Shown in pieces: positions 2,383 through 33,500 of a stretch of DNA of 64,000 bases. Under the pieces are notes generated by a model. It was not told where the DNA came from. It ran no database searches and saw only the letters and a list, made by a program, of their open reading frames with translations. The stretch lies in the IMG/VR virus record IMGVR_UViG_3300008110_000030, positions 124,001 through 188,000 of that record. The stretch is one strand, 5' to 3'. A program made the position numbers and the translations under genes. Within the stretch, counting starts at the first letter, position 1, and every line of letters begins with the position of its first letter.

Positions 2383-3120
2383 ATGAAAGACATACTTCAA
2401 GACATCGTAGGGCATACACACAATTTAGGCTTTTTGAACATTGTAAAAATTACAGGGGACAACGAAGGCACTAAAATTGACAGTATGGCCGATGACCGTA
2501 GCGTTATTATGCTAGGTGAAACAAATGCACCCGTTCCAGAGTTGGGTGGCGTTTTTGGAATGCCACAACTTAATAAATTAAAGTATTTGTTAGACTGCAC
2601 TGAATATAAAGAAAGTGCCAAAATTGATTTAGTATCAGCAGATAGGAATGGCGCAACTGTTCCAGTAGGTATTCACTTTGAAAATAAAGAAGGCGATTTT
2701 AAAAACGACTATCGCTTTATGAATACAGAAATTATTAATGAAAAATTAAAAAGCGTTAAGTTCAAAGTACCACAATGGGACGTAGAGCTGGAGCCAAGTG
2801 TTTCTAGTGTACAGCGTTTTAACTTTCAAGCAGGTGCTAACACAGAACACACAACGTTTGTTGCAAAAACTGATGGTGATAAACTAAAGTTTGTTTTTGG
2901 TGATCAAAGCACACACGGTGGCGAATTTGTATTTGCTACAGGTATCAGTGGCACACTAAACAAAGGCTGGACATGGCCCGTTGCACCAATTTTAGCAATT
3001 CTAAAAATTGCAGACGTTAACAATACTAAGATTAGTTTTTCTAATGGTGTAGGTGCTATGATGATTACTCTTGATAGCGGCATTGCAACTTACAAATACA
3101 TTGTTCCAGCACAAGCCTAA
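2383..3120 (+). CDS. DNA polymerase sliding clamp (gp45-like)
   Basis: 245 aa, clamp-sized alpha/beta protein directly after the polymerase; ends YKYIVPA as clamps do. Confidence 0.7.
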   Translation: MKDILQDIVGHTHNLGFLNIVKITGDNEGTKIDSMADDRSVIMLGETNAPVPELGGVFGMPQLNKLKYLLDCTEYKESAKIDLVSADRNGATVPVGIHFENKEGDFKNDYRFMNTEIINEKLKSVKFKVPQWDVELEPSVSSVQRFNFQAGANTEHTTFVAKTDGDKLKFVFGDQSTHGGEFVFATGISGTLNKGWTWPVAPILAILKIADVNNTKISFSNGVGAMMITLDSGIATYKYIVPAQA

Positions 3121-3122
3121 AT

Positions 3123-3476
3123 ATGATTAAAGGACTTCAGGGCATAACAGGAGTATCAGTAGGAGCTGGCAATACCAGCTTGCCTTATGTTAATCCAAAT
3201 CCCAATAACCCTATGACAGGTATGCTACGTATTAATGGCACTGAGATGGAAGTGTTTAATGGCTCTAGCTGGCAAATACTATCCACTAGCTATGCTACTG
3301 TAGGGTTAGATCAAGAAGTGCTTGATATCATACAATGGGCACGTAAGAAGCGTGATGAAGAAAAAGAAATGTTGGTTCTTGCCCAAACTAACTCAGCTGT
3401 TAAAAATGCGTTAGATGCTGTTGAACGAGCAAAAGAACAATTAAAAATAATAAAGGATCTATCAATTGAGCACTAA
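3123..3476 (+). CDS. Hypothetical protein with C-terminal coiled coil
   Basis: 117-aa ORF packed in the operon. Confidence 0.7.
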   Translation: MIKGLQGITGVSVGAGNTSLPYVNPNPNNPMTGMLRINGTEMEVFNGSSWQILSTSYATVGLDQEVLDIIQWARKKRDEEKEMLVLAQTNSAVKNALDAVERAKEQLKIIKDLSIEH

Positions 3477-4995
3477 TAGAATCAATTACACAGAAACACA
3501 ACGAGACTACGCTGTTTACTTGCCAGCTATTAGTAGTTTTTATACTAAAATGGTCAGTGATACTAGGCATAATCACAAGAGTGGGGTAGTGTCAGAAAGA
3601 CTGCCTAAAGGTTTTGAGCATGGGATTGAATCCATGAACTTTTTAGATGCTGAACGAGGTGCATTTACATACAAGTATGGTCTATATTCAGCAGGTCATG
3701 CGCAACTTGACTTAGATAAAACTATGCTTCGAGATGCAATGGTGCAAGAGCGAGATCGAGACAATACTATTATCTTAGGTGACTCAGGTGGTTTCCAAAT
3801 TGGTAAAGGTGTTTTAAAGTTTGATTGGCAAGACTTTAAAGGTAAAGGTGCTAATAAAACTCGTGATCAGATTCTAAATTGGTTAGAGCTTACTGCTAAC
3901 TGGAGTATGGTGCTCGACGTTCCCACATGGGCTAGTAATGACTTGCATCGTGACAAAACTGGATTGAATAATTTCCAAGATTGCTTAGATGCAACTATTT
4001 GGAACAACAATTATTTTGCACAAAATCGTCTAGGCAATACAAAATTTTTAAATGTCTTACAAGGTAACAGTTTAGAAGAAGCTGACATTTGGTATGATGC
4101 AGTTAAACATTTGCCATTTGAAGGATGGGCAATGGGTTCACAAAATATGTGTAATATGCCAATTATTCTACATAGACTAATAACAATGCGTGATGAAGGC
4201 ATGTTAGAAGGTAAGAACTGGATGCACTTTTTGGGCACTGCTCCTTTAGACTGGGCTTGTTATTTGACAAGCATCCAACGTGTATTGCGTAAGCATTGTA
4301 ATCCTAATATGACAATCAGTTTTGACTGTGCAAGTCCGTATATTGCAGTAGCATATGGTCTTTCATATACAGATCCAAGTTTCCGTAGAGATAAATGGTC
4401 TATTTTGATGGAAAAGGCTCCGGACAATAAAGTTTGGGCTGGTGATAATATTCCATTCCCTTGGCGTAGTGCTATCGGTGATCGTTTAACAATGGGCGAT
4501 GTTTGTTATTATAAACCAGGCGACTTAAACAAGATTGGTAAAGAAGGCAAAACTAGTTGGGATAGTTTTAGTTATGGGCTATATATGGCGCATAATACTG
4601 AAGTACATATCCAAGCTGTGCAACGTGCCAACCAATTGATGGATATGGAAACAGCAAGGTATAAACCAGACTGGAGATATTGGCGCAAACTTAACGAGAG
4701 AGAAGAAAAAAGTGATAGCCCAAGCGAATGGGTTCCACGTAATATTCTATACTTTGATAGATTTGTTCAAGAATTATTTGAAAGTGATGATCCACGCACA
4801 ATGCTCAAACACGCACACAATTTCTTAACTGAATTGCAAGGCGGATTACAGCGAGGAAAAACTGGCAACGATGTTAAGAATCGTGTTATCAATGCTGTGT
4901 TCGATTTTGGTGAAGATACATTCCCATCAAATGAAGAACTAACTGATATGAACGATGAAAAAATTGTTGCACTTGAAAACACTTTGGATGATTGA
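3466..4995 (+). CDS. dpdA: DpdA-like DNA 7-deazaguanine transglycosylase (TGT superfamily)
   Basis: TGT catalytic motif LGDSGGFQ, MVLDVP, NVLQG, MHFLG, SFDCASP and C-terminal AHN. Lacks the CxCxxC zinc site of tRNA TGTs. Clusters with folE/queE. Confidence 0.8.
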   Translation: MSTNRINYTETQRDYAVYLPAISSFYTKMVSDTRHNHKSGVVSERLPKGFEHGIESMNFLDAERGAFTYKYGLYSAGHAQLDLDKTMLRDAMVQERDRDNTIILGDSGGFQIGKGVLKFDWQDFKGKGANKTRDQILNWLELTANWSMVLDVPTWASNDLHRDKTGLNNFQDCLDATIWNNNYFAQNRLGNTKFLNVLQGNSLEEADIWYDAVKHLPFEGWAMGSQNMCNMPIILHRLITMRDEGMLEGKNWMHFLGTAPLDWACYLTSIQRVLRKHCNPNMTISFDCASPYIAVAYGLSYTDPSFRRDKWSILMEKAPDNKVWAGDNIPFPWRSAIGDRLTMGDVCYYKPGDLNKIGKEGKTSWDSFSYGLYMAHNTEVHIQAVQRANQLMDMETARYKPDWRYWRKLNEREEKSDSPSEWVPRNILYFDRFVQELFESDDPRTMLKHAHNFLTELQGGLQRGKTGNDVKNRVINAVFDFGEDTFPSNEELTDMNDEKIVALENTLDD

Positions 4996-5010
4996 TTTAT
5001 CCAATTTCCA

Positions 5011-5039
5011 TTGACTTTACCAATCGTATAGTTTATACT
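5011..5039 (+). promoter_or_regulatory. sigma70-type promoter
   Basis: TTGACT-N17-TATACT, ending 6 nt before the ATG at 5046. Confidence 0.7.
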
Positions 5040-5045
5040 AGTTTT

Positions 5046-5558
5046 ATGCTTAACACACAAGAACGTCAAGAAGTAACATATTTTACTGGATACGAAGTTG
5101 AACATACTATTTGTCATGGTATGAAGACTTTGTTCGTAGTTGGAACTCCGCCACTCGATGATATCCTATACAAGGCAATTCAAACTGACTGTAAACATAT
5201 CTACTTTGGCACAAGTCAAAGTTTTAATCCTAAATCAATTAGCCACGAAGAATATAAAGCGTGGGATGATGTTATTATTGGATGTCTAAAAGCTGACTAC
5301 TGGGTAACGCTAGACTTTGGCGTTGAACACGTCGAGGGTGTTTTAGAATCTGCTTATAATGAGTATCCTCGCTTTGTACCAATGATTAGTGTTAAACTAC
5401 CTTACATTAATCAACTCAACTACAATGCCACACTTAAACTGGATGACCGAACTTGGGGTGCTACTAATCCAGGTGTGTGGACACATCAACTACATGACCT
5501 AATGAGTAAAGACAAGTATACTTACTGGGATCAGTACACTCAAGATACACCAACATGA
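5046..5558 (+). CDS. Hypothetical protein in the deazaguanine cluster (170 aa from the ATG at 5046)
   Basis: ORF track starts at 4992, but the promoter at 5011-5039 implies the 5046 ATG. ATGA overlap with the next gene. Confidence 0.75.
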   Translation: MLNTQERQEVTYFTGYEVEHTICHGMKTLFVVGTPPLDDILYKAIQTDCKHIYFGTSQSFNPKSISHEEYKAWDDVIIGCLKADYWVTLDFGVEHVEGVLESAYNEYPRFVPMISVKLPYINQLNYNATLKLDDRTWGATNPGVWTHQLHDLMSKDKYTYWDQYTQDTPT

Positions 5559-5944
5559 TTATCCGACAAGATCAACGTCCTAACAAAATGATTTGGGTTA
5601 CCTTTCGCAAAGAAGGTATTCACAAATATCCAGCCGCACTTACAGATACAGCACTTGCTACAGGTGACGAGTATGATGTAAGTTTCCTAGGATATCCGCA
5701 TCGTCACATCTTCCATTTTAAAGTATGGATTGGTGTTACCCACGATGATCGCGATATTGAATTTATCCAGTTTAAACGCTGGTTGGAAAAACTGTACGCA
5801 GAAGGTACACTCCAACTAGATTACAAGAGTTGCGAGATGATGTCAGGCGATTTATATGACGCCATCTCCAATAAGTATCCTAACCGTGAGGTTTGGATTG
5901 AGGTCTCCGAAGATGGAGAAAATGGTTCTTTTATCAAGTATTAA
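5555..5944 (+). CDS. QueD-like T-fold protein (LxxxHRHxF; possible DpdL-type CDG decarboxylase)
   Basis: EGIH...LGYPHRHIFH, SCEM and C-terminal EVSEDGEN resemble the His/Glu metal and substrate residues of PTPS/QueD. Confidence 0.7.
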   Translation: MIIRQDQRPNKMIWVTFRKEGIHKYPAALTDTALATGDEYDVSFLGYPHRHIFHFKVWIGVTHDDRDIEFIQFKRWLEKLYAEGTLQLDYKSCEMMSGDLYDAISNKYPNREVWIEVSEDGENGSFIKY

Positions 5945-5964
5945 CATTTTAAGGAAATTGTAAA

Positions 5965-6204
5965 ATGGCACAACCTGCATGGCTTAACAAATATCTAACA
6001 ATGAAGCCTGAAGTAAACAAGATTTTTGATGATCTTGAAGCCTGGCACGATCATTGCCGATTGGAGCTGATTAATTTTAACCCAGCAGACTTGTACAAGT
6101 CTGATGTTTATCGCGACTGGAATCGTCGTAAAAATAGCAAGCCACGTCATTTTAAAAATGACTTTAACCGCAACAGCAACTATAAAAAGCCTTATCGTCA
6201 ATGA
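5965..6204 (+). CDS. Hypothetical protein
   Basis: 79-aa ORF with AAGGA RBS; ATGA overlap with the next gene. Confidence 0.7.
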   Translation: MAQPAWLNKYLTMKPEVNKIFDDLEAWHDHCRLELINFNPADLYKSDVYRDWNRRKNSKPRHFKNDFNRNSNYKKPYRQ

Positions 6205-7292
6205 TTTACATTGTTGATTTAGAAGCAGTTGAAACAAGGTACACTGGACAGTGGAAGTCCCACGTACCTAACATTTTACGAAAGGCAGGACACAATGTTC
6301 AAATTATATCTGGCCCTACGGATATCCCTACTGCAACCACTCCTGGCGCTTTTCTTAATTTTGGTGGTACCAATATATACAAAGCTAGCCAAGTGGAGCA
6401 ACTGGGCCGTTTATTTTGTAACGGAGCCATTCATCCCGGCGATCACTTTATTTTTACTGACGCTTGGCATCCGGGCATCATCAATCTAAAGTACATGAGC
6501 GAGTTGCTGGGTATTCCAATAACTACACACGGCTTGTGGCATGCTGGCAGTTATGATCCACAAGACTTCTTAGGACGTCTTGTTGGCGATAAGCCTTGGG
6601 TTAGGCATGCTGAGAAGAGTTTCTATCATGCGTTTGACCACAACTACTTTGCCACAGACTTTCACATTCATATGTTTTACGAAAACTTGATCCAAGCAGA
6701 TCCAGATCGTAGACAAACAATGTATAAGATTGTGATAGAAGATACAGTATTCAATAACAAGGTTGTGCGTACAGGATGGCCTATGGAGTATATGGATTCA
6801 ACTTTGACCATGTACAAAAATATGCCCAAGCGTGATCTTATTTTGTTTCCACATCGTATTGCTCCAGAGAAACAAGTTGAGATCTTCCGTGACTTAAAGG
6901 AACATTTACCGCAGTATGAATTTGTTGTATGTCAGGATCAACAACTAACAAAGAATGAGTATCATAATTTGTTAGGTGAGGCAAAGATAGTGTTTAGTGC
7001 TAACTTACAAGAAACGCTTGGCATTAGCTGTTATGAAGGTGCAGTAGTTGATGCTATTCCTATGGTGCCAGATAGATTAAGTTATACCGAAATGTACTAC
7101 GACAATTTTAAATATCCAAGTGAATGGACTGAAAGTTGGGATTCGTATACTGCACATCGTCCGCTGTTATGTAATAAGATTATACAATACATGGATAATT
7201 ATGAAAAATTTTTACCCAAGTTAAAGAATCAAACTATTGATTTAACCAACAACTTTTTTAGTGCAGGTAAATTAATTGAGCAACTCAAATAA
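6201..7292 (+). CDS. GT-B fold glycosyltransferase (GT4-like)
   Basis: LILFPHRIAPEKQ and ETLGISCYEG...AIPMVPD resemble the GT4 R..xEK and ExFG...E motifs. Confidence 0.8.
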   Translation: MIYIVDLEAVETRYTGQWKSHVPNILRKAGHNVQIISGPTDIPTATTPGAFLNFGGTNIYKASQVEQLGRLFCNGAIHPGDHFIFTDAWHPGIINLKYMSELLGIPITTHGLWHAGSYDPQDFLGRLVGDKPWVRHAEKSFYHAFDHNYFATDFHIHMFYENLIQADPDRRQTMYKIVIEDTVFNNKVVRTGWPMEYMDSTLTMYKNMPKRDLILFPHRIAPEKQVEIFRDLKEHLPQYEFVVCQDQQLTKNEYHNLLGEAKIVFSANLQETLGISCYEGAVVDAIPMVPDRLSYTEMYYDNFKYPSEWTESWDSYTAHRPLLCNKIIQYMDNYEKFLPKLKNQTIDLTNNFFSAGKLIEQLK

Positions 7293-7854
7293 TAGAACAA
7301 TTATAGAAGAAAATGACGTATTTAGAAAATATAATTTTTCTTCTATAATCTCTCCGCAAGATGAATCTCTTGCAAAAACAGATATCAAAACAATAATTGA
7401 AAATGGGAACTATTTTAAAAATAGTCCAAAATTTCAAACATCTGAAAACTTGTTTTCTAGACACGAACCACATTGGTTAAAATTTAGAATGAGTTTTATT
7501 TTTAGTTGTTTCATGCATATAGGGCGTGAAGTACAAATTAAAAATATGCAAGCGTGGAGTTTTATGACTAATAATGATATTGTTGAAGATCGTGAAGATC
7601 TTTGGCATACTCATCATTTAACAAAACAAAATAATTCAATTTCAGGAATTTATTATTTGCATATTCCTGAAGATGCTGTTTATATGTTAAGCGGCACAGA
7701 ATTTGCTCCTAATGGAATTACCTCTCCTGAACGAGTAGTAGTTACTCCAGGAAAGCAAAGTTGGATAGTTTATCCAAGTGACCAATGGCATAGACCAATG
7801 CCTACACAAAGCAATGGCTATAGATTTATTATAGCCGCAGATATGGAGTATTAA
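7276..7854 (+). CDS. Putative 2OG-Fe(II) oxygenase (double-stranded beta helix)
   Basis: WHTH...ISGIYYL...YPSDQWH...RFIIA: HxH...H...R pattern. Confidence 0.65.
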   Translation: MSNSNNRTIIEENDVFRKYNFSSIISPQDESLAKTDIKTIIENGNYFKNSPKFQTSENLFSRHEPHWLKFRMSFIFSCFMHIGREVQIKNMQAWSFMTNNDIVEDREDLWHTHHLTKQNNSISGIYYLHIPEDAVYMLSGTEFAPNGITSPERVVVTPGKQSWIVYPSDQWHRPMPTQSNGYRFIIAADMEY

Positions 7855-7855
7855 A

Positions 7856-8158
7856 ATGAAATGGTATGACAAGTGGATCATGAATCGTGCTGAAAGAATC
7901 ATGTACAAACAAAGAGAGGAAAAAGAAATGAGTTATGGTCAAGTGGCTGTTAAATCAGCAAGATTGAGTGATGGTGGCTTAGACAGCCCCGCAGTGCGTT
8001 TTAAAATGTTCAAAGCTAGCGGTGGTACTATCATTGAAACTCAAGTTTATGATGAAAGAAAAGATAGACACGTAAACGGACTGTATGTCATAACCAATGA
8101 CAAAAACTTAGGTGAAGAAATTGGTAAAATTTTGACACTGGAAAGTTTGAAAGTTTGA
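7856..8158 (+). CDS. Hypothetical protein
   Basis: 100-aa ORF with GGAG RBS. Confidence 0.7.
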   Translation: MKWYDKWIMNRAERIMYKQREEKEMSYGQVAVKSARLSDGGLDSPAVRFKMFKASGGTIIETQVYDERKDRHVNGLYVITNDKNLGEEIGKILTLESLKV

Positions 8159-8184
8159 CAAATGATCCTAAATAATGTTATAAT
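8155..8184 (+). promoter_or_regulatory. sigma70-type promoter with nested TAAATA
   Basis: TTGACA-N18-TATAAT; spacer contains CCTAAATAAT. Confidence 0.75.
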
Positions 8185-8210
8185 TAACTTGTTTAGTATA
8201 GGAATCGATA

Positions 8211-8960
8211 ATGATATCAAAAAGTAATGAAACAGGATTGGACGCAATGGCTGGCGATGGTGGCTACAAAGAAGCATACCTAGGCGATCATATTCGCTTT
8301 AAAATGAAACGTGAAGGCAAACGTTTTTGGGCTGGCGACAACATTAGTGACTACTTACACGAAGGTGATATAGAAAAACTGATTGACGAAGCAACTCCGG
8401 CATTTGAACAAGTGCTCGATCGTTTGCTGATTGATCGTGAAAGCGATCCTAATTCACATGGCACAGCTCGTAGGCTTGCTAAAATGTACTTTAACGAAAT
8501 AATGGCAGGACGTTATGACCCAGCACCAGATTGTACAGCATTTCCAAATGACTCGGCGGATCGTTACGAAGGTATGTTGGTTGTTCGTAGTGAGTTGCGT
8601 AGTATGTGTAGCCATCATCACCAACCCGTTGCTGGCGTTGCTTATATTGGTATTATTGCTGCCGAGAAACTCATTGGACTCTCAAAGTACACCCGAATCG
8701 CACAGTGGTGTGCAAGACGAGGTACTCTCCAGGAGGAACTTTGTAATGACATTGCTAGGGAAATCAGCAAAGCAACAAACTCTAAAAACGTAGCAGTCTA
8801 TATTCAAGCAACACATGGTTGTTGTGAGAATCGCGGCATTATGGCACACAGTAGTCTTACACAAACTACAGTACTTACAGGATCATTTAAAACTGATCCT
8901 GGTGCAAAGAAAGAGTTCTTTGACAACATCAAATTGCAACAAGAGTTTGCTCCACGATGA
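8211..8960 (+). CDS. folE: GTP cyclohydrolase I
   Basis: SMCSHH, IGLSKYTRI, LQEEL, HGCCENRG motifs. Confidence 0.96.
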   Translation: MISKSNETGLDAMAGDGGYKEAYLGDHIRFKMKREGKRFWAGDNISDYLHEGDIEKLIDEATPAFEQVLDRLLIDRESDPNSHGTARRLAKMYFNEIMAGRYDPAPDCTAFPNDSADRYEGMLVVRSELRSMCSHHHQPVAGVAYIGIIAAEKLIGLSKYTRIAQWCARRGTLQEELCNDIAREISKATNSKNVAVYIQATHGCCENRGIMAHSSLTQTTVLTGSFKTDPGAKKEFFDNIKLQQEFAPR

Positions 8961-9133
8961 ATTTAGACTTTGATCAGCAACACCAGTATTATTTAGAGTA
9001 CAACATTAAAGCCGTAGAGTTGGGTAAAATGTGTAATCAGTATCCTGCGCTTCAAAAAGCGTGGGATCAATTTAAAACTGTTTACGAACTTTGTAAGGAA
9101 GAAAACGATGAAGATTACCAGTCATTTCCTTAA
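8957..9133 (+). CDS. Small hypothetical protein (58 aa, not in ORF track)
   Basis: ATG overlaps the folE stop (ATGA); MNLDFDQQHQYY...YPALQKAWDQFKTVYELCK...; fills the gap. Confidence 0.65.
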   Translation: MNLDFDQQHQYYLEYNIKAVELGKMCNQYPALQKAWDQFKTVYELCKEENDEDYQSFP

Positions 9134-9590
9134 TTGGCTCGAATCTAAAGACCGTAAACGTGTTATTATGGACCGTACTTGCGATGAGCCTTTACTTACA
9201 CGTTACTACTTGTTCTTAAAGGATCGTAAAACATTTCCGTTTAACGTATTCTTGCACAAGTTCCATAAGGGTGATCCAGGCGATGTACACGATCATCCTT
9301 GGCCGTATGCTACACTGATACTAGCAGGCGGTTACTATGAATACACACCTAATTTTGAATATGGCAAAATGGTTGGTGAAACTAAACATTGGCGTGGCCC
9401 TGGACATTTTAGACTTTGTAGTGCTAACAGTTATCACCGTATTGAATTAAAAGAGGGTGTAACACCCTGGACTTTGTTTATGCCAGGCCCACAACGACAA
9501 GAATGGGGATTCTGGGTAAACAACAAATGGATACATAACAATCAATACTTAAAGGACAAGTATGAACAAGCGCATAATAACATACACTGA
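9108..9590 (+). CDS. Cupin-fold protein
   Basis: HDHPW...LILAGGYYE...HRIEL cupin motifs. Confidence 0.7.
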   Translation: MKITSHFLNWLESKDRKRVIMDRTCDEPLLTRYYLFLKDRKTFPFNVFLHKFHKGDPGDVHDHPWPYATLILAGGYYEYTPNFEYGKMVGETKHWRGPGHFRLCSANSYHRIELKEGVTPWTLFMPGPQRQEWGFWVNNKWIHNNQYLKDKYEQAHNNIH

Positions 9591-10116
9591 ATTTAAAAAT
9601 TTAGTCAGCAGTCTGTGTAGACAGATAACTCTTAGTGACTGGAAACCAGATTACATTGTTGGTATTAGCAGAGGCGGTCTTTTACCAGCAGTTATGATTA
9701 GTCATTACTTGAATGTTCCAATGCGCCCATTGCAAGTAAGTTTGCGAGATGGTGGCGAGTGTGTTAGCGACCTTGGCATGGCAGAAGATGCATACGGTTA
9801 TGTCAATATAGAAGACAGAGAATTTAATGATGGTGAAACTAGTAATGTTTTATCTAGAAAAAATATATTAATAGTAGATGATATTAATGATCAAGGTAAC
9901 ACAGTTAATTGGATATTAGATGATTGGCCAAGTGGATGTATGCCCAATGATAAATCTTGGGAAACTGTTTGGAACAACAATGTAAAGTTTGCTGTATTAT
10001 TTGATAATCTAGCCAGTAAAGCATCTGTTAAAATGGACTTTGCAGGTGAGGAAATTAATAAAGCAGAGAATGATGTTTGGATTGAATTTCCTTACGAGGA
10101 GTGGTGGACAAAATGA
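9562..10116 (+). CDS. Type I purine phosphoribosyltransferase (xanthine/guanine PRT-like)
   Basis: IVGISRGGLLPA, PRPP-binding ILIVDDINDQGNT, WIEFPYE. Confidence 0.88.
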   Translation: MNKRIITYTEFKNLVSSLCRQITLSDWKPDYIVGISRGGLLPAVMISHYLNVPMRPLQVSLRDGGECVSDLGMAEDAYGYVNIEDREFNDGETSNVLSRKNILIVDDINDQGNTVNWILDDWPSGCMPNDKSWETVWNNNVKFAVLFDNLASKASVKMDFAGEEINKAENDVWIEFPYEEWWTK

Positions 10117-10511
10117 CAGACTTATATAAAATAGTTCCAACTGAACCACCATTTATAGAAGATTCAAAAAATGCTCCGTGGGACAATTTAATTGAAGAAG
10201 ACTTCCACGTTAAAGTATTTGCAGACAAATATCCAGTTACAGAAGGACATTTGTTATTTGTACCAAAGTACAACACTACACATGTTTTAGCAGACGCTAT
10301 GAACGATGCTGTTCAGTTAGGAATAAAAAAAGTACAAGCAGGCGAGTGGGACGGATTTAATGTAGGTATTAATATTGGGTTATCTGCAGGACAAACAGTA
10401 GATTGGCCACATGTACATTTAATCCCAAGACGTAAAGGAGACATGGAAGATCCAACAGGCGGAGTAAGGCATGTCATTCCAGAAAAAGGTAACTATAGGA
10501 AATCAAAATGA
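10113..10511 (+). CDS. HIT family nucleotide hydrolase
   Basis: DKYPVTEGHLLFVPK, AGQTVDWPHVHLIPR; ATG at 10113 overlaps the previous TGA. Confidence 0.9.
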   Translation: MTDLYKIVPTEPPFIEDSKNAPWDNLIEEDFHVKVFADKYPVTEGHLLFVPKYNTTHVLADAMNDAVQLGIKKVQAGEWDGFNVGINIGLSAGQTVDWPHVHLIPRRKGDMEDPTGGVRHVIPEKGNYRKSK

Positions 10512-10711
10512 GACAACAAATTGTAGGCACATTAAAACAACACTTTGAAGCACACATTCTTAAACACAAAATGAATGTCGATATCATGCTAGCGAATCCA
10601 ATGGCTATTCACGATCACACAGATTTAATGGATGCTATTGAAAAAGAAGTTGCGCAAATTGCAGAGTATATGGACAAACTAGAAGTAATGGAAAAATACT
10701 TTAAGGATTAA
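10508..10711 (+). CDS. Hypothetical protein
   Basis: 67-aa helical ORF, ATGA-coupled. Confidence 0.7.
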   Translation: MRQQIVGTLKQHFEAHILKHKMNVDIMLANPMAIHDHTDLMDAIEKEVAQIAEYMDKLEVMEKYFKD

Positions 10712-10713
10712 TT

Positions 10714-10887
10714 ATGAAATGTCAGACTTGTGGTAACGAATATAGTGCAACTTGTGATTATAGACAAGGCAGATGTCCGCATCATACACCAATTCTAACA
10801 AACTATCATTTTAGATATGTTAATCTATGGCAATCAATCAAAAACTTTTTTACAAAAGGCGACTGCGACTGCGGTCATAAACATTGA
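10714..10887 (+). CDS. Small Cys/His-rich putative zinc-binding protein (57 aa, not in ORF track)
   Basis: MKCQTCGNEYSATCDYRQGRCPHH...CDCGHKH; AAGGA RBS. Confidence 0.6.
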   Translation: MKCQTCGNEYSATCDYRQGRCPHHTPILTNYHFRYVNLWQSIKNFFTKGDCDCGHKH

Positions 10888-10888
10888 T

Positions 10889-11407
10889 ATGGCACAACTA
10901 TATAAGATTACTCCTTTAGAAAAGAAAAACATAGAATTTTATGTTGACGTTTACGAAACACTACCTAACGGTGATGTTAGAGGTTTTATAGTAAGCGAGT
11001 GGTATCGATGGGGTCAAGGGTTCCGTGAATTAGATGATCCTGTATTAGACTACGGTCATGGTGTAAATTCTATATATTGTAATACTAGTATTGGTTGGGG
11101 CTGTGAACTAGATGACTTATGTTCAGTACATATTGAATTTCAAGGCGAGTTTACTGACGAAGAAAAAGAAGAAATTGAAAATCGATGCCGTGGAGATTTA
11201 GAAGACGATGAAGGTCGATGGGGCACGGCTTGGATCTATGATGGTGACCACGCATGGCAAGTTGAAGATGATGGCGTTCTCATTTATGGACCAGTAAAAA
11301 TTGACCTTGTTGATGAGGATTCATATAACGAAGTTATTAAAGAAGATATTGGTATTGAAAAATATCAAGCTACTTCTTGGCCATTTGATACTAAAAAAGA
11401 TGAGTGA
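10889..11407 (+). CDS. Acidic hypothetical protein
   Basis: Start moved to MAQLYK, directly after the 10714-10887 ORF. Confidence 0.7.
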   Translation: MAQLYKITPLEKKNIEFYVDVYETLPNGDVRGFIVSEWYRWGQGFRELDDPVLDYGHGVNSIYCNTSIGWGCELDDLCSVHIEFQGEFTDEEKEEIENRCRGDLEDDEGRWGTAWIYDGDHAWQVEDDGVLIYGPVKIDLVDEDSYNEVIKEDIGIEKYQATSWPFDTKKDE

Positions 11408-11600
11408 CACAACCGTAAAAGTTACATGGGATAATCAAAACGGGTTTTGGTGGAACGAAACTTGTTCTATGGTATTAGAAGTATTTGGTCTACCTGGAGG
11501 ACGTTATACTAGTCATCCTGACCAAGATGCCATGTTTTTCATTTTTAATAATGTAAAGGATGCAAATCTATGTCGAATACTACTAAGCGAGAGATTGTAA
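11400..11600 (+). CDS. Hypothetical protein
   Basis: MSDTTVKVTW...; ATG overlaps the previous stop. Confidence 0.6.
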   Translation: MSDTTVKVTWDNQNGFWWNETCSMVLEVFGLPGGRYTSHPDQDAMFFIFNNVKDANLCRILLSERL

Positions 11601-11788
11601 AAATATCACTATTGTTTATTGTAGCCATTTTTGCTTTAGGTGCAACAATGTATTACAGTATTCCAAAAAAGGGAGATGTGATCATAATTGATTGTAGACT
11701 ATCTGAAATAAGTCCAGATATTCCAATTTGGGCAAAACAAGAATGTCGTAAAAAACAATTAGAATCATTTGACAAATATCCTAAATAA
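11570..11788 (+). CDS. Small membrane-anchored protein
   Basis: Hydrophobic segment ISLLFIVAIFALGATMYY. Confidence 0.55.
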   Translation: MSNTTKREIVKISLLFIVAIFALGATMYYSIPKKGDVIIIDCRLSEISPDIPIWAKQECRKKQLESFDKYPK

Positions 11789-11797
11789 TAGTATAAT
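11769..11797 (+). promoter_or_regulatory. Consensus sigma70 promoter with nested TAAATA
   Basis: TTGACA-N17-TATAAT; spacer AATATCCTAAATAATAG. Confidence 0.85.
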
Positions 11798-11819
11798 AAA
11801 TTATAAATTGGAATCATAT

Positions 11820-12727
11820 ATGGAAAAAATTAGATACAGCGAAATGTTTTATAGTGTACAAGGCGAAGGTCGCTTTGTAGGAGTGCCCAGTGTTTTCTTT
11901 AGAACATTTGGTTGCAATTTTGAATGTAGAGGCTTTGGTCAGCCACGTGATAACTTTATCCCAATTGATCAAATGCCACACACAACAACGATCCAAGAGC
12001 AAATCCAGATCATCCAAATGCATATAAGAGTTTTGAAGAATTACCAGTTAGTAACATTGGTTGTGATACAAGCGCCAGCTGGAGTGCAAAATACAAACAT
12101 TTAGCCACTTGGGACACTGTAGATATCATTGCTGAAAAACTAACCGCAATGACTCCAGAAGGTAAGTGGACTTGTGATAATGGTCAAGATGTACATCTTG
12201 TTATTACAGGTGGCGAGCCATTAATGTGGCAAAAGCAAATAGCGGCTTTGCTAAAACAGCCGCAATTTAAAGATATTAAAAACGTAACATTTGAGACAAA
12301 CACTACGCATGAACTAAAGCAAGACTTTATTCAAATGATGCTAGACCTTAGTTTTGGTCCTTCTAGAGATCCAAACTACTTTGTTAAATTTACATGGAGT
12401 TGCAGTCCTAAGTTAACTAGTTCAGGTGAAGCGTGGGAAGAAGCAATTAAGCCAGAAGTTGCGGCTCAATATTACGGTCTTCCTGGTAGAAACTTTTATT
12501 TTAAATTTGTTGTAACTGATGAACAAGATGTTTTAGAAGTTGAAAAAGCTATTGCACTTTATAAGGAAAAAGAAATATTCTGTGATGTTTATTTGATGCC
12601 TTGTGGTGCAACTCAAGAAGGACAGGCTAAGACTGCACGCCAAGTTGCAGAACTTTGTTTACAAAAAGGTTTTAAATTTAGTCCTAGATTGCATGTGGAC
12701 TTGTTTGGAAACGCATGGGGAACTTAA
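11820..12727 (+). pseudogene. queE: 7-carboxy-7-deazaguanine synthase QueE (radical SAM), split by a frameshift near 11977-11990
   Basis: N-part: EMFYSVQGEG...FFRTFGCNFEC. Other frame continues DPRANP...IGCDTSASW...VITGGEP...TFETN...SCSPKL...SPRLHV. Confidence 0.85.
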
Positions 12728-16826: not shown

Positions 16827-18038
16827 ATGTCCGCTACTGTAATGAAAGACGAGAACAATAAGAAAGTTCTTGAAAAGCGAGAATACACTACTAAAGAGAA
16901 AAATGATGCAATTGAAAAGCTCATTACAGCTCGTGTAGGATTACTTCTACGCCAACCTTTCTTTGGCAATTTAGCTACTCGTTTACAACTTATTGATGCT
17001 AGTGAATGGTGTCCTACTGCCGCCACTGATGGGCGTAATTTTTATTACAACATTGACTTTGTTAAAAAGCTCAGTGCAAAACAATGCGAGTTTCTTTTTG
17101 GTCATGAAACATTGCACAATGTATTTGATCACCTTACACGTCGATTAGACAGAGATCCAAGATTTTTTAACTATGCTTGTGACTTTGCTGTTAACCAAAT
17201 TTTAGTTGACGAACGCATTGGTGAAAAAATTGACCAAGTGCAAATTTGCTTGGACTCTAAATACCGTGGCAAAAGCGCAGAAGAAATTTATGATGACTTG
17301 ATGAAGAATGTTAAGTTTGTTGATGCTGATGAGTTCCTAAAACAACTTGGCGAACTTCTTGATGACCATATGGACTGGGATGAAGAAGGCGATCCCAGAG
17401 ATGGTGAAGGCGGAGACAAAGATAGCAACGGTGCTCCCAAATATAGTAAAGAAGAATTGAAAAAAATTCGAGATGAATTAAAGGAAGCAATGGTTGATCT
17501 CACAGAACCAAAAATGGATTGGCGTCAATTGTTACGTATGAATATTCAAAGTATTCTTCGTAGCAATTATAGTTTTATGCGTCCAAGCCGAAAAGGTTGG
17601 CATACTGGTGCAGTTTTGCCAGGTATGCTAAATGATGAAACTATCGATATCTGTATTGGTATTGATATGTCTGGTTCAATTGGTGATGCTCAAGCCAAAG
17701 ACTTCTTAAGTGAAGTTAAGGGAATTATGGACGAGTATGTTGACTATAATATCCAACTTTGGTGCTTTGATACTGAAGTATATAACTATGCCAAATTTAG
17801 TGCTGATAATGGTCAGGATTTAGATTCTTACGAAATTAAAGGTGGCGGCGGTACTGATTTTGACTGTAATTATAACTTCATGAAAGAGCAAGGGATTGAA
17901 CCTAAGAAATTTGTAATGTTTACTGACGGATATCCATGCGGAAGCTGGGGAGATGAAGACTACTGTGATACATTGTTCATTATTCACGGACCAGAAGAAA
18001 TAAAATCTCCATTCGGTCAGTACGCACATTATAAATAA
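16827..18038 (+). CDS. HExxH metallopeptidase-like + VWA domain protein (MoxR partner)
   Basis: TAATDG, HETLH, MIDAS IDMSGS, GGGGTDF, FTDG. Confidence 0.85.
   Translation: MSATVMKDENNKKVLEKREYTTKEKNDAIEKLITARVGLLLRQPFFGNLATRLQLIDASEWCPTAATDGRNFYYNIDFVKKLSAKQCEFLFGHETLHNVFDHLTRRLDRDPRFFNYACDFAVNQILVDERIGEKIDQVQICLDSKYRGKSAEEIYDDLMKNVKFVDADEFLKQLGELLDDHMDWDEEGDPRDGEGGDKDSNGAPKYSKEELKKIRDELKEAMVDLTEPKMDWRQLLRMNIQSILRSNYSFMRPSRKGWHTGAVLPGMLNDETIDICIGIDMSGSIGDAQAKDFLSEVKGIMDEYVDYNIQLWCFDTEVYNYAKFSADNGQDLDSYEIKGGGGTDFDCNYNFMKEQGIEPKKFVMFTDGYPCGSWGDEDYCDTLFIIHGPEEIKSPFGQYAHYK
18030..18037 (+). promoter_or_regulatory. T4-type late promoter TATAAATA
   Basis: Perfect consensus in the loop of the TACGCA/TGCGTA inverted repeat, upstream of 18054. 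Confidence 0.6.
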
Positions 18039-19561: not shown

Positions 19562-20036
19562 TACAGAAGTAGGAGGCATCGGTATTAATGGCCGTATGCC
19601 TTGGCTTGAATTATTTTCAGCTAAAGATGCCTACCAAGAACTTGCCGAAAATAATATAGTATTAGTTGGTCGAAAATCTTTTGATTCACATCATCACTTA
19701 CGTGGCGAAGTAACTTATGTTTATTCTAACAATGTAGACTTTGTAGAAAGTGATAATGTAAAAAGAGTTTCAGGATCTGCTGATGATATCATTAGCATGA
19801 TTAAAGAAACACACCCAGATAAAAATATTATTATTGCAGGCGGTGTTAATGTGTTCAAAGAATTTTGGGATCACATTGACGATTGGCGTGTAACTATTGT
19901 TAAAGAGTTTGTGGTCTACGAAGAAGATATTGATTTAACATCTATTCAATACCACTGGAATGATAGACGTCTGCTTGGTGAAGGTGTAGATAACAATCAA
20001 AATTTTGAAATTTGGCATTACCGTAAGAAGGTCTAA
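19536..20036 (+). CDS. Dihydrofolate reductase-like protein
   Basis: GGIGINGRMPW, VLVGRKSFDS, IIAGG; adjacent to thyA. Confidence 0.8.
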   Translation: MTTTAIVISTEVGGIGINGRMPWLELFSAKDAYQELAENNIVLVGRKSFDSHHHLRGEVTYVYSNNVDFVESDNVKRVSGSADDIISMIKETHPDKNIIIAGGVNVFKEFWDHIDDWRVTIVKEFVVYEEDIDLTSIQYHWNDRRLLGEGVDNNQNFEIWHYRKKV

Positions 20037-20908
20037 TGGATAATTATCACAGTCTAATATCAAAAATAATCAACGAAGGTTCACTAAAAGAAGATCGAAC
20101 TGGAGTAGGTACAATTAGTTTATTTGGGGAGCAACTTAGATTTGATTTAAACAAAGGCTTCCCTGCAATTACAACCAAAAAGTTAGCATGGAAAGCAGTA
20201 GTTAGCGAACTGCTTTGGTTTATTTTAGGTAGTGGTGACGAACGTAAACTTAAAGAAATTTTACACGGTGACGCAAATAGTGATAAGAAGACTATCTGGT
20301 CTGAAAATGCTAGCGCAGATTATTGGGTCAACAAACATCAAAAGAAACATAAAGACGACTTAGGTAGGATTTATGGAGTACAGTGGCGTACTTGGAGATC
20401 TCCAGTCTTTGGAGTTAACAAGATGGGCATTCGACACATTGACCAACTGCAACAATTGCTCAAGGGCATCAAAGAAGATCCAAACGGTCGTAGACACATT
20501 ATCACAGCATGGAATCCAGGAGAGCTTGATTCAATGGCGCTACCGCCTTGCCATTGCTTTGCACAATTTTATGTAAACAACGGCAAACTGAGTTGTCAAA
20601 TGTATCAACGTAGTGCTGACATTTTTCTAGGAGTGCCTTTTAACATCGCATCGTATGCTTTATTCACTCACATGATTGCTCAATGTTGTGATTTAGAAGT
20701 AGGCGAGTTAATCATTACGTTTGGTGATGTGCATTTGTATAATAATCATTTAGAGCAAGCACAACAGCAACTAGAAAGAGAAGCATTTGATTGTCCTAAA
20801 CTGGTGTTAAACCCACAAATAAAGGACATTACAAAATTTGCAATGTCCGATATTAGTTTAGAAAACTATCAAAGTCACGACGCAATTTCAGCGCCAATGG
20901 CTGTTTAA
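20036..20908 (+). CDS. thyA: Thymidylate synthase
   Basis: DRTGVGT, LGRIYGVQWR, MALPPCH, YQRSADIFLGVPFN, DVHLY. Confidence 0.97.
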   Translation: MDNYHSLISKIINEGSLKEDRTGVGTISLFGEQLRFDLNKGFPAITTKKLAWKAVVSELLWFILGSGDERKLKEILHGDANSDKKTIWSENASADYWVNKHQKKHKDDLGRIYGVQWRTWRSPVFGVNKMGIRHIDQLQQLLKGIKEDPNGRRHIITAWNPGELDSMALPPCHCFAQFYVNNGKLSCQMYQRSADIFLGVPFNIASYALFTHMIAQCCDLEVGELIITFGDVHLYNNHLEQAQQQLEREAFDCPKLVLNPQIKDITKFAMSDISLENYQSHDAISAPMAV

Positions 20909-30589: not shown

Positions 30590-33500
30590 TTAAGACAGTT
30601 TGCCATAGTAATACTTATCGGGCAACTCTGCTGTGAACTCTTGCAGGAATCTAGCCTGTGGAGTCGACTCTTGTTGTATTGTAGTTGTTCCGCCAAGGGT
30701 ATACCAAATTTTACCAATTTTTTGTACTACTTTGATGTCAACATTTGATATCACTGTAGAATCATCGGCCAAGTTTAGCACACTAGGATTTACCGTTAGC
30801 ACATAGTTATTACCAACTTTTGTAATGGTAAAATCTGGCGCAACTATTAAATCTCCAGTTTGATTTTGGCTGTTCACTTCGTTCGAATTATGAGTAATGC
30901 TAAAATCATGTCTGATCAGCTGGTTAGTTCCTCTAACTGGTTTAGTTAGAATCTTGCCTGCCATGTAGACCGTTACTTGATCTTCAAGACCAATCGCTTC
31001 ATTGAAGCTGAAATCAGTTAAAGTATAAGAAGCTACTGTGGTTACGTTTACCCAATTACCGTTTACATATTGCTGATATCTGTTGGTAGTTTGATTAAAT
31101 TTGTAATTTTCAGGAGTTTTATACGTTTTTATAGTATATCCTTCTCTGTAAGGGATAGTTTCATTATTTCCAACGTTGAATACTTTTGTCCCAATAGGAT
31201 AGCTATCAGCTACCCCTGTTCCAAGTGTTCCTCGAGTTAGATTTGTTAGTTTATTACCAACAATAGATCTGAATTCAATTCTTTCTCCAGCAACAAAGAT
31301 TGAGCTAGGTTTTGGATTATTAACATTAACCACACCAAATATACTTGTATCGCTGACTTCAATTTCTCTATCAGTTGATAAGAGAGCCTTTGTTAAAGTC
31401 ACTGTGCTGTTCTTTGATAATCTCTTAAATTGTACAGCGTTAGTCATATCTTTGAACATTCTATAAGAAACTGCTTCGCTTGATACAATGTCACTAATGC
31501 TTGTCACAACAACCCTGTCATTGTTTCCTAAATTAAATCTGTTTGATATTTGTATGTAGTCACGATCAACCACTTGATAATCGTAATTTGGAATTAGTGG
31601 ACGGCCGTTAACATCGACCCAAACGTTATTAATGTTATAAACAGGTCTGCTAAGTTTATATTCATTCCTATTAGGATTAGTTTTGAATACTTCTCTTCTA
31701 ATTAAATTCTCATCATGATTTGTATAGGTAACTACAGATACTCTTTGACCAGCTTGTATTTTAGAAGGAGATCTAAATGTTATTTGATTTCCAAAAATTA
31801 CATAGTCTGAATCACGCAGTATACATACTGCAATTACATCGCCCACTTGTGCAACTCCTGAGCTCATTGTAACTGTGTTATCAATTGTATCAAATTCGTA
31901 ATCTCGTCCCACTACTATGATTTTTCCGTTCTTATATACTTCAATATCAGATATTGATAACGTTCTTGTCAAGTAAGGAATATTTTCACCTAGTCTAAAT
32001 GTTTGAGAGTTTTGTGTAACTTCATAATATTCAGTTTCAGGCGGCATCATTCTTTGCGTTGGAGCAAGACCCCAATAAATTCTAGCTGTATCTTCATCAG
32101 GACGGTTAGTAATATGCGCACCCCAATATACAATATTATCAGGAGTTAATGTTGTTGTATTTGAAGTGTGTGTAACTTTACAAATATAATATTGACCACT
32201 GAAAGAAACAATGTCATTAACGTCATAAGAAGTTGTGCTTGCCCATGCTGAGAATTCTAAGTTTGAATTAGTTTGCGTACTCGTATGTCCAATTTTACAA
32301 ATATAGGAAACATTGTTGTACAAAACAGTGTCATTTATTACATAGTAGACATTTTCTTCCCAAGGACCTTTCCAGTCTTCTGTAGAAGAAGTTAGTCTAG
32401 TTACTGCTGCCATAACGTGTAATGGCGCAATGTTGCCAGGTGGCTTCGTTAGAGTATATGTTGTATTATTATCAATTACGATTTCTTGATTATAAATTTC
32501 ACTATAAGTTTTAACTGTAGATCCAAATAACAATATGTTGATCACTGTTCCTGCTGTTAAAGTAGGCGTGTTAGTGATAATAATCTTAGCACGTTTTGAT
32601 CTACCTGCTACTTTTGTTAAAGAACTAGTATTTGAAATTGAAATATAATAGCTACCAATATCTTGATAATTAACTTCTGATAATATTTCAAAAGAACTTG
32701 CGCCTGCATTTGCACTAGTCACAGTGTAACTAAATCTACTTAAAATACTATTTCCACCAATTGTTGTCTTTTGAACTGTAAGAGCAAGTGTATTAGTGGT
32801 TGACAGCTGGTCAACTCCATATTCAGTAGTAATAATTTCAACAGTGGTTGTTCCATTACTGTTTGCTGTTAATGTGTAATCAGTATTTTCTTTAGCAACA
32901 AAGTTACCAATTAAAACAAATATTTCTTGCCCGCTACCAATTGTATCTTGGATCACAAATTGCATTGTAGACCCATCCATTATAAACTGTTTAGTAGAAA
33001 TCAAATTACTGCCAGCACCAGGACTGTTAAACACTGTCATTGACAACGTGTCAAAAATCTCACCTTTGACTAATTCTTCTGTTGAAGGGCTGTGTTCAAC
33101 AGATAAAAATTCGCCACCGTCTAGACTAATATCAGTTGCACTTAGTCCAGTTGCAGTTCTAAATCGTATTTCACCCGCATCTGAAATTGTTGAGAAATCA
33201 CCGCCTGTAATATTTGTATCAAGAACGATATCATCAGTTGGTAGGTTTACTCCGTCACTTAATTCTTGACGTATTTCAATTTTTGTACCAGTAACTGGAA
33301 CTTGTGGAAGAGTCAATGTACTAGTAGATCCGTTAGTTGTAATCGTATTGAACAATGCGTCATTGTTAGTTTGATTTACAGTACCATAGTTTTCATCATC
33401 AACTCTAACGCCGTCAAAATAAACGTTAATTTTTGTTCCTAATAAAGGAGTATACCCTAATTCATATGTAGATGTAGTTCCGTTTGAAATTACTAACAAG

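Follow-up and report, generated by a model that had tools for sequence, protein, structure and literature searches.

A glycosyltransferase consistently linked to a predicted 7-deazaguanine DNA-modification cluster in a lake-water jumbo phage

The closest chemically characterized counterpart of the locus described here is the system of Cellulophaga phage phiST, in which FolE, QueD, QueE, DpdL and DpdA3 operate without QueC and the DNA carries plain 2'-deoxy-7-deazaguanosine (dDG) (PMC10516641). DpdL is the predicted 7-carboxy-7-deazaguanine (CDG) decarboxylase of this phage and is defined by an LxxxHRHxF motif, and a DpdA was found in all known 7-deazaguanine phages (PMC10516641). Acidovorax phage ACP17, a T4-like phage of another lineage, has a compact operon in the order QueD-FolE-p188-DpdA-GT-DpdL-QueE, but its DpdL and DpdA alone gave no dDG in Escherichia coli, and the authors suggested that other enzymes are needed (PMC10516641). 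A deazaguanine system was noted earlier in Pseudomonas jumbo phage PA5oct (Wroclawvirus) (PMC7824862), and the G-specific restriction resistance of its DNA was interpreted as modified G, with a base that remains chemically unidentified (PMC12191111). Glycosylation of modified bases has precedents elsewhere. The alpha- and beta-glucosyltransferases of T4 are GT-B fold enzymes that add a sugar to 5-hydroxymethylcytosine in DNA as an anti-restriction layer, tRNA-queuosine alpha-mannosyltransferase (QTMAN/GTDC1) is a GT4 enzyme that glycosylates a 7-deazaguanine nucleoside within a nucleic acid, and HuiG, from an actinomycete secondary-metabolite cluster without DNA-insertion machinery, glycosylates a free 7-deazapurine base made via the QueE pathway, namely an O-methylated preQ0 (bioRxiv 10.64898/2026.04.15.718813). 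We found no paper that describes a glycosylated deazaguanine in DNA or that links a glycosyltransferase (GT) to phage deazaguanine systems.

We analysed a window of 64,000 nucleotides (positions 124,001 to 188,000 of IMGVR_UViG_3300008110_000030), which belongs to a 214,617-bp contig that CheckV rates as 61% complete. An earlier note, made from the sequence alone, listed a set of deazaguanine genes on one strand after the polymerase and clamp, and this observation is confirmed, as all the open reading frames it named exist on the + strand. The upstream anchor of the conserved synteny is a family B DNA polymerase (26-2326; PF00136, 4.7e-34), present in 80 of 83 related loci. It is followed by a conserved 245-aa protein (2383-3120; phrog_12062, function unknown, 7.6e-38) that is not part of the modification chemistry and is possibly a clamp, as its orthologue is annotated as sliding clamp beta in Phosso but as a structural protein in PA5oct.

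The 509-aa protein encoded at 3466-4995 had no sequence match in Pfam, PHROG, NCBIfam or the PDB. Its AlphaFold2 model (pLDDT 67.6, pTM 0.70), however, hit only tRNA-guanine transglycosylase (TGT) and DpdA structures in the PDB (7nq4 and 1q2r at 1.5e-5, and 7ui4) and phage TGT/DpdA models in BFVD. D106 (DSGGFQ), D151 (LDVP) and D287 (SFDC) are invariant in 19 homologues and these motifs are colinear with ACP17 DpdA. The protein is 40% identical to EST35_0316 of PA5oct, and we regard it as a divergent DpdA/TGT-fold transglycosylase of the PA5oct type, predicted to exchange guanine for a deazaguanine in DNA. Like this protein, the transglycosylase of phiST is too divergent for Pfam TGT and lies next to replication genes, but DpdA3 of phiST is 259 aa long and shows only marginal profile similarity to the 509-aa protein, with a Foldseek value of 1.6e-3. 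The 424-aa DpdA of ACP17 was not found by the HMM of the 509-aa family.

The next open reading frame opens at 4992, but its likely start is the ATG at 5046 (5046-5558), giving about 170 aa as stated in the earlier note. This protein, p188, is a conserved protein without assigned fold or function that accompanies the module in 75 of 83 loci and its HMM hits the ORF directly upstream of ACP17 dpdA at 5e-21. None of 746 family representatives has a Pfam domain, and E35, E37, D108, D151 and D152 are invariant acidic residues. The protein encoded at 5555-5944 (p129; phrog_17812, 2e-31) had been described as a QueD-fold protein. Its T-fold is indeed QueD-like, but it carries LGYPHRHIF, which is the motif that defines DpdL, and it aligns with DpdL of phiST (to which it is only 30% identical) and of ACP17, while it differs from the QueDs, which carry CxxxHG(H/Y). 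It is therefore identified as DpdL, the predicted CDG decarboxylase, and the expected core base is 7-deazaguanine and not CDG, whereas the earlier note had inferred CDG or a derivative. A small basic protein (p79, 5965-6204, pI 9.6) lies between DpdL and the GT and was found in 57 of 83 related loci and in 65 of 80 loci chosen by GT.

The GT (6201-7292) has a predicted GT4-like GT-B fold (AlphaFold2 model, pLDDT 78, pTM 0.74) and is presumably retaining, with an invariant EX7E motif (E271/E279). The top Swiss-Prot structural hit was tRNA-queuosine alpha-mannosyltransferase (1.1e-8, 16% identity), followed by BshA and PimB-type enzymes, whereas the PDB hits were glycogen synthase, BshA and BGluT. 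Its Atlas structural neighbours belong to Glycos_transf_1 and also include QTMAN. The similarity to QTMAN is, however, no stronger than to generic GT4 enzymes (TM 0.56 against 0.64 for BshA), no QTMAN_N (PF12038) match was found even at E<=10, and QTMAN attaches its sugar to the cyclopentenediol of queuosine, which is absent here. The T4 glucosyltransferases showed no detectable sequence relation and were not among the top structural hits, and their base is a pyrimidine with a hydroxymethyl acceptor, although divergent GT alleles occupy the same slot in related phages.

Downstream of the GT, a 2OG-Fe(II) oxygenase-like protein (7276-7854) gave only matches below cut-off (PF13759, 1.3e-4; phrog_81, 1.1e-5). 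Among the 83 related loci it was found only in L005, that is, only in this phage and its nearest relative, and a search of 50,697 phage records gave one distant hit. It is a lineage-specific insert and cannot be a general hydroxylase step for the GT, as the earlier note had considered possible. A small basic protein (p100, 7856-8158) without family match is present in 31 of 83 loci. FolE (8211-8960; PF01227, 5.6e-39; phrog_2197, 1.3e-43) is a GTP cyclohydrolase I that would catalyze the first step from GTP. It is followed by three variably present genes, encoding a cupin-like protein (9108-9590; phrog_4786, 2.4e-34, no Pfam hit) that is present in 36 of 83 loci and absent from PA5oct, ACP17 and X1, a type I phosphoribosyltransferase (PRTase, 9562-10116; PF00156, 3e-12) that resembles xanthine/guanine PRT (NF006613, 1.1e-8, below cut-off) and is present in 26 of 83 and 54 of 80 loci with a weak match in PA5oct, and a HIT-family nucleotide hydrolase or transferase (10101-10511; PF01230, 2.5e-10) present in 22 of 83 loci.

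QueE, the CDG synthase, appears in two frames (11820-12104 and 12149-12727), both hit by phrog_2076, but it is one gene (11820-12727). The apparent frameshift is an artefact of 2 extra nucleotides (CA) at about 11977-11978 of the window sequence, since L005 lacks them and reads through, and contigs from four public runs in three studies, otherwise identical to the window, all lack them as well. The repair of queE that the earlier note called for is therefore not needed. The note also took the genes as co-transcribed, which is not shown: perfect sigma-70 consensus sites, known as sequence matches only, precede folE (8155-8184, + strand; TTGACA-18-TATAAT with a TG extension, 12 of 12 matches) and queE (11769-11797, + strand; TTGACA-17-TATAAT, conserved in the nearest relative). 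No QueC or Pfam-TGT match was found in the whole contig, but a QueD/PTPS, the true QueD, lies outside the window at genome 74139-74477, about 50 kb upstream.

Linkage of the GT to the deazaguanine genes had been named beforehand as one point on which the idea could fail, and the outcome was in its favour. In metagenomic sequences, the GT lies within 2.5 kb of DpdL in 79 of 80 loci chosen by GT and in 41 of 42 DpdL loci that have enough downstream sequence. It also sits beside DpdL in six phage lineages (PA5oct, Phosso, ACP17, X1, BUDD and BCSR5), alongside at least two DpdA subfamilies. The PA5oct locus (EST35_0311-0325) has the same order of PolB, 245-aa protein, DpdA-like protein (40% identity), GT (40%), DpdL (57%), PRTase-like protein, QueE, p190 and RNase H, but no p188, folE, cupin, HIT or 2OG gene, its PolB is split by a homing endonuclease and its DpdL motif reads HFHYF. 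The ACP17 operon contains homologs of p188, the GT and DpdL (5e-21, 7.6e-81 and 9.8e-49), X1 has GT-TGT-DpdL-QueE, and in BCSR5 the GT is next to a weak TGT match. In Phosso, DpdL and the GT stay adjacent although the DpdA-like gene lies 170 kb away. Among 50,697 phage records, every cultured phage with a full-length GT hit has DpdL, but seven DpdL lineages lack the GT, which is the pattern expected if the GT acts downstream of DpdL. In the same loci the GT is more conserved than the DpdA-like protein (59-88% against 53-63% identity), and its N-terminal domain, normally the acceptor-binding domain, holds 18 residues that are invariant across all lineages.

We propose, with a probability of roughly 0.5, that the region is a QueC-less, DpdL-containing 7-deazaguanine DNA-modification module extended by a dedicated GT. 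FolE, the distant QueD and the intact QueE would convert GTP to CDG, DpdL, a QueD paralogue lacking the catalytic Cys, would convert CDG onward to its predicted product 7-deazaguanine as in phiST, and the 509-aa protein would exchange guanine in phage DNA for this base. The GT would then use a host nucleotide-sugar to glycosylate the deazaguanine, either as the free base before insertion or on DNA after insertion. In this view p188 is an accessory protein and the PRTase plausibly recycles the guanine released by DpdA into the GTP pool. The interpretation of the earlier note is thus partly supported. The gene identities, folds and motifs, the intact queE and the tight linkage of the GT to DpdL independent of phage lineage were established by our analysis, whereas the chemistry of DpdL, the acceptor, donor and attachment atom of the GT and the timing of glycosylation are inferred. 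Several points weigh against sugar addition. Firstly, phiST, the only DpdL phage whose DNA was analysed, lacks the GT and p188 (it has an adjacent MazG and ATPase) and carries plain dDG, and glycosylation is therefore not required for DpdL/DpdA function. Secondly, 7-deazaguanine has no hydroxyl group and no conserved hydroxylase accompanies the GT, so that the sugar would have to go on C7, N2, another ring atom or a CDG carboxylate, which is unusual for GT4 enzymes. Lastly, the GT is acidic (pI about 6), though the DpdA-like protein is too, and a prediction of a GT-DpdL complex gave no answer.

The alternative that survives best, although we consider it less likely, is a plain dDG system exactly as in phiST, in which the GT glycosylates a phage or host protein, the cell envelope or another metabolite and travels with the cluster only through inherited gene order. 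Much of the linkage indeed comes from one large clade with vertically inherited synteny after PolB, next to the replication genes, one clade member (locus L061) has the DpdA-like gene, p188 and DpdL but no GT within 7 kb, and the GT fold is generic GT4. However, the GT sits inside the deazaguanine operon of ACP17, X1 and BCSR5, which are different phage types with another DpdA subfamily, it stays with DpdL when DpdA is relocated in Phosso, and it was never found without DpdL in the phage records. It is more doubtful that the GT works on a soluble intermediate and that the sugar does not end up in DNA, for example on a pterin, as for BGluT, or on the free 7-deazapurine base, as for HuiG, giving a metabolite, a transient activated or protected intermediate, or a decoy. 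Tetrahydrobiopterin glucosyltransferases are among the PDB structural hits (ranks 18, 21 and 30), and FolE and T-fold enzymes are also the first steps of pterin synthesis, but these hits rank below many other GT4 enzymes, and QueE and a DpdA-type enzyme are always in the same module, which points to a DNA-directed 7-deazapurine. A nucleotide-pool route, in which the PRTase converts the deazaguanine base to a nucleotide that the polymerase incorporates while the TGT-fold protein acts elsewhere, for example on tRNA, is very unlikely, since although a purine-type PRTase and a HIT enzyme lie between folE and queE in many relatives, both genes are absent from ACP17 and X1 and variable within the clade, the TGT-fold gene is conserved next to the replication genes in every locus, a DpdA occurs in all known 7-deazaguanine phages (PMC10516641), and no kinase or reductase set dedicated to such a nucleotide was seen.

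This jumbo phage therefore carries a gene set for swapping guanine in its DNA for a 7-deazaguanine, and the GT is so consistently tied to that gene set in several unrelated phages that an undescribed sugar-bearing form of the base is a realistic, testable possibility. If so, the result would be a sugar-bearing 7-deazaguanine that shields the phage DNA from restriction.

The genome of which the window covers bases 124001-188000 is a 214,617-bp IMG/VR viral contig that CheckV rates 61% complete, and near-identical sequence occurs in lake-water and other freshwater-associated metagenomes. The region of interest is a run of + strand ORFs that follows a family B polymerase, and the observation of the earlier note held, as every gene that it listed is present at its place. 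The polymerase (26-2326), compared with L001:2605-7831, is a single ORF here, while in PA5oct it is split into two ORFs by a homing endonuclease gene. Elsewhere the window encodes an HNH endonuclease (16827-18038), a thymidylate synthase (20036-20908), a late sigma factor (54804-55694) and an SbcCD-like nuclease pair (55691-58499), and on the - strand a single ORF of 4,747 aa (30590-44833) matches a virion structural protein family (phrog_10938, 1128 bits) and a head-closure family. The coding strand switches near 20.9 kb and 54.7 kb, and the window has no tRNA genes. A megablast search of the region against phage records found nothing.

The 509-aa protein (3466-4995) has no Pfam, PHROG, NCBIfam or PDB sequence match, whether searched as a single sequence or as a profile, and no match to the TGT family PF01702 was found for this protein or anywhere in the genome. 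Other accepted phage DpdAs (ACP17, X1) also lack a PF01702 match. It belongs to a very large unannotated family, with 7,791 homologues at E<=1e-3 in a word-limited search, none of which has a Pfam domain. An AF2 model built on 19 homologues had a pLDDT of 67.6 and a pTM of 0.70, although only its core (residues 100-290) is confident. A Foldseek search of the PDB with this model hit only tRNA-guanine transglycosylases, which were all of the top hits, and the DNA preQ0 insertase DpdA (7ui4), and among viral models (BFVD) the hits included the TGT of phage Motura, an nt-1 protein, phiST DpdA3 and actinophage queuine tRNA-ribosyltransferases. The catalytic-type and base-binding aspartate motifs of the TGT/DpdA superfamily are present: residues D106 (in DSGGFQ), D151 (in LDVP) and D287 (in SFDC) are invariant in 19 homologues and colinear with the motifs of ACP17 DpdA; they are equivalent to D102, D156 and D280 of the Z. 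mobilis TGT. C347, H376 and H381, which could form the Zn site (Cys/His cluster) of the superfamily, are invariant as well, but their geometry lies in low-confidence parts of the model. We accept the protein as a DpdA-type enzyme of a divergent subfamily, which is shared, at 40% identity, with PA5oct-like Pseudomonas jumbo phages and with Sinorhizobium phage Phosso.

The QueD-fold protein p129 (5555-5944) carries LGYPHRHIF, which is the LxxxHRHxF motif that Cui et al. (PMC10516641, section 16) use to separate DpdL, the predicted CDG decarboxylase of phiST, from QueD, which has CxxxHGH. p129 aligns with phiST and ACP17 DpdL, whereas the real QueDs of these phages keep the Cys-containing motif CxxxHG(H/Y), including the QueD of this genome that lies outside the window at 74139-74477. 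DpdL thus occurs here together with FolE, QueD, QueE and a DpdA-type protein, and no QueC is found in the contig. FolE matched PF01227 with 133.9 bits against a cut-off of 27. This gene set matches that of phages making 2'-deoxy-7-deazaguanosine (dDG). Therefore, the expectation of the earlier note that CDG or a derivative of it is the inserted base should shift to 7-deazaguanine or a derivative, but decarboxylation of CDG to 7-deazaguanine remains a predicted activity that has never been shown experimentally, not even for phiST or ACP17 DpdL (PMC10516641). A MazG-family pyrophosphatase gene (PF03819, 1.1e-9) lies at genome position 98903-99106, outside the window and distant from the cluster, while phiST has a MazG next to DpdL.

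The two QueE pieces lie in frames 1 and 3 and are both covered by phrog_2076, whereas NCBIfam QueE models match only weakly. Compared with the nearest relative (locus L005, 88% DNA identity), the window has two extra bases (CA) in a CA-rich stretch at 11977-11978. Logan contigs from four runs in three studies, otherwise identical to the window, all lack exactly these two letters. The frameshift is thus an artefact or a rare variant of the deposited contig, and queE is not broken. In all four runs the contig depth over folE (8185-8972) was 10 to 100 times that of its neighbours, with many variant letters, but since the folE genes of relatives are recruited at 90% likeness, depth there says nothing about this phage. 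Two perfect sigma-70 consensus sites (12 of 12 matches) lie directly upstream of folE (8155-8184) and queE (11769-11797), and the queE site is conserved in L005. They suggest host-polymerase (early) expression of the base-synthesis genes, and the co-transcription assumed in the earlier note is therefore not established for the whole cluster.

The 363-aa glycosyltransferase (GT) has no Pfam hit above cut-off and no significant NCBIfam or PDB sequence hit, either with single sequences or with profiles; Glycos_transf_1 matched only 3 of 16 homologues, with a best E of 1.1e-3, and gave no hit in the genome scan. Its Atlas relatives belong to GT4/Glycos_transf_1. The AF2 model (pLDDT 78, pTM 0.74) has the GT-B fold with two Rossmann domains, with 313 PDB hits at E<=1e-3 that were led by glycogen synthase and BshA and included GlgM, PglA and tetrahydrobiopterin glucosyltransferase. 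Swiss-Prot structural hits are all GT4-type, the first being tRNA-queuosine alpha-mannosyltransferase (QTMAN; 1.1e-8), followed closely by BshA and PimB-type enzymes. The EX7E motif of the C-terminal domain (E271/E279) is invariant in 15-16 homologues and across ACP17, X1 and BCSR5. The resemblance to QTMAN is structural only and no stronger than that to other GT4 enzymes, and the QTMAN_N domain (PF12038) gave no match at E<=10 in any of 16 homologues, so that it is a lead only. The GT has as many invariant residues in its N-terminal domain, usually the acceptor domain, as in its donor domain. In four related loci (L035:7948-9120, L077:12691-13866, L079:8995-10194 and L081:9256-10431) the GT slot holds a divergent allele of about 392-400 aa, which is about 21% identical to the window GT (hhalign probability 99.2%) and has D instead of the first E of EX7E. 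This allele may have a different sugar or linkage specificity, and it recalls the diversification of T-even glucosyltransferases.

Absence of linkage between GT homologues and the deazaguanine genes had been named beforehand as an outcome that would speak against the idea, and the result is in favour of linkage. In 80 IMG/VR loci retrieved with the DpdA-like protein, the order PolB, p245, DpdA-like, p188, DpdL, p79, GT, FolE, QueE, RNase H is conserved. Of 42 such loci with at least 2.5 kb downstream of DpdL, 41 have the GT. One distant clade member (L061:9965-14392) has the DpdA-like gene, p188 and DpdL but no GT within 7 kb downstream, and would be a natural GT-less comparison. In 80 loci retrieved with the GT, DpdL lies within 2.5 kb in 79, and the remaining locus is truncated. 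The pair also recurs in other phage types and with other DpdA subfamilies: ACP17, which is T4-like, has QueD-FolE-p188-DpdA-GT-DpdL-QueE, Xanthomonas X1 has GT-TGT-DpdL-QueE, and BCSR5 has the GT next to a weak TGT match. In Phosso, DpdL-GT stay together with FolE and QueE while the DpdA-like gene lies 170 kb away. Among 50,697 phage records, every full-length GT hit comes from a phage with DpdL, whereas DpdL occurs without the GT in phiST-like phages, RHph_I1_18, Ahp1, Bakedbeans, D479, BUCT-ZZ01 and MA9V-3. This one-way dependence is what one expects if the GT acts on the DpdL product. The GT is also more conserved than the DpdA-like protein in the same loci. Distant GT hits in PhiXhv-12-like phages were not counted as family members, since they match only residues 66-305 at 25% identity and lie in an amino-sugar context without DpdL. 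Prediction of a GT-DpdL complex gave no answer and is not used as evidence.

The 2-oxoglutarate (2OG) oxygenase is found only in this phage and L005 among the related loci and has almost no relatives among cultured phages, while the cupin, PRTase and HIT genes are present in a third to two-thirds of relatives and absent from ACP17 and X1. We considered the 2OG oxygenase, which the earlier note had allowed as a possible hydroxylase, and the cupin as the enzyme that would create an O-glycosylation site, but neither is conserved with the GT and both were rejected as general steps. The PRTase resembles xanthine/guanine PRT, and recycling of the guanine released by DpdA is a plausible inference. 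A TagD/RfaE-like cytidylyltransferase (PF01467, 2.8e-15) lies next to the phage QueD (L003:2068-2553, at about 74.7-75.2 kb of the genome and outside the window) and was considered as a possible donor-sugar activator. It was rejected as a part of the module, because its relatives are mostly cyanophage, vibriophage and Streptomyces phage genes and no PA5oct-type or other GT/DpdL phage appears among the records listed.

p188 is conserved and has a homologue directly upstream of ACP17 dpdA, but searches of Pfam, NCBIfam and the PDB with single sequences and profiles gave no significant hit, and an Atlas features search gave no meaningful named hit. An exhaustive profile search found 746 representatives but no annotated relatives. 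About 28 of 150 representatives (in P0284-P0380) are 200-350 aa long, with a C-terminal extension that has no informative Pfam domain; one shows a weak portal-like match, which may be a gene-calling fusion, and one fused form sits on a 1.7-kb contig with no context. The ‘glycosylase’ of Phosso in the equivalent position is unrelated.

PA5oct DNA resists several enzymes in a pattern that suggests modified G, and its QueE and PTPS genes were noted, but the base was not determined (PMC12191111). A deazaguanine synthesis/incorporation system in PA5oct was listed earlier (PMC7824862). The 2023 survey of phage deazaguanines does not mention a glycosyltransferase; it reports that ACP17 and phiST DpdL+DpdA gave no dDG in E. 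coli and suggests that other enzymes may be needed (PMC10516641). Our literature searches found no description of a glycosylated deazaguanine in DNA. There is precedent for glycosylation of 7-deazapurines, since HuiG acts on a free base (bioRxiv 10.64898/2026.04.15.718813) and QTMAN acts on queuosine in tRNA.

We are confident that this is a DpdL-type 7-deazaguanine DNA-modification system with a new DpdA subfamily, and it is likely that the GT belongs functionally to it. That the final DNA base carries a sugar is plausible but unproven, with a probability of about 0.4-0.5. The main chemical objection is the lack of an obvious hydroxyl acceptor or a conserved hydroxylase, which would require C- or N-glycosylation, or an ester on CDG, and the main comparative objection is that phiST makes plain dDG without the GT. 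The interpretation in the earlier note, a QueC-less cluster that inserts CDG or a derivative to which the GT could add a sugar, is thus supported only in part. The gene identities, modelled folds, motifs, uninterrupted queE and GT-DpdL linkage come from the analysis itself, while guanine exchange on DNA by the 509-aa protein, the chemistry of DpdL and the glycosylation of the base are inferred.

Phage 7-deazaguanine DNA modifications are an established anti-restriction strategy with eight described bases, none of which is glycosylated. What is added here is a very divergent DpdA subfamily, invisible to Pfam and shared with PA5oct, and a glycosyltransferase family that, with p188, forms a conserved module with DpdL across unrelated phages, several of which (PA5oct, ACP17, X1) are cultured. 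If the GT4-like enzyme puts a sugar on 7-deazaguanine, for example as a C7 or N2 glycoside formed after DpdL action, the DNA of an abundant freshwater and marine jumbo-phage clade, and of the cultured phages PA5oct, ACP17, X1, BCSR5 and Phosso, would carry a glycosylated purine. To our knowledge this would be the first sugar-bearing purine base described in any DNA, and it could also account for the undetermined modified G of PA5oct and for the failed DpdL+DpdA reconstitution. A new hypermodified base would matter for restriction and defence-system biology, for sequencing and cloning of such phages, and for phage-therapy candidates such as PA5oct.
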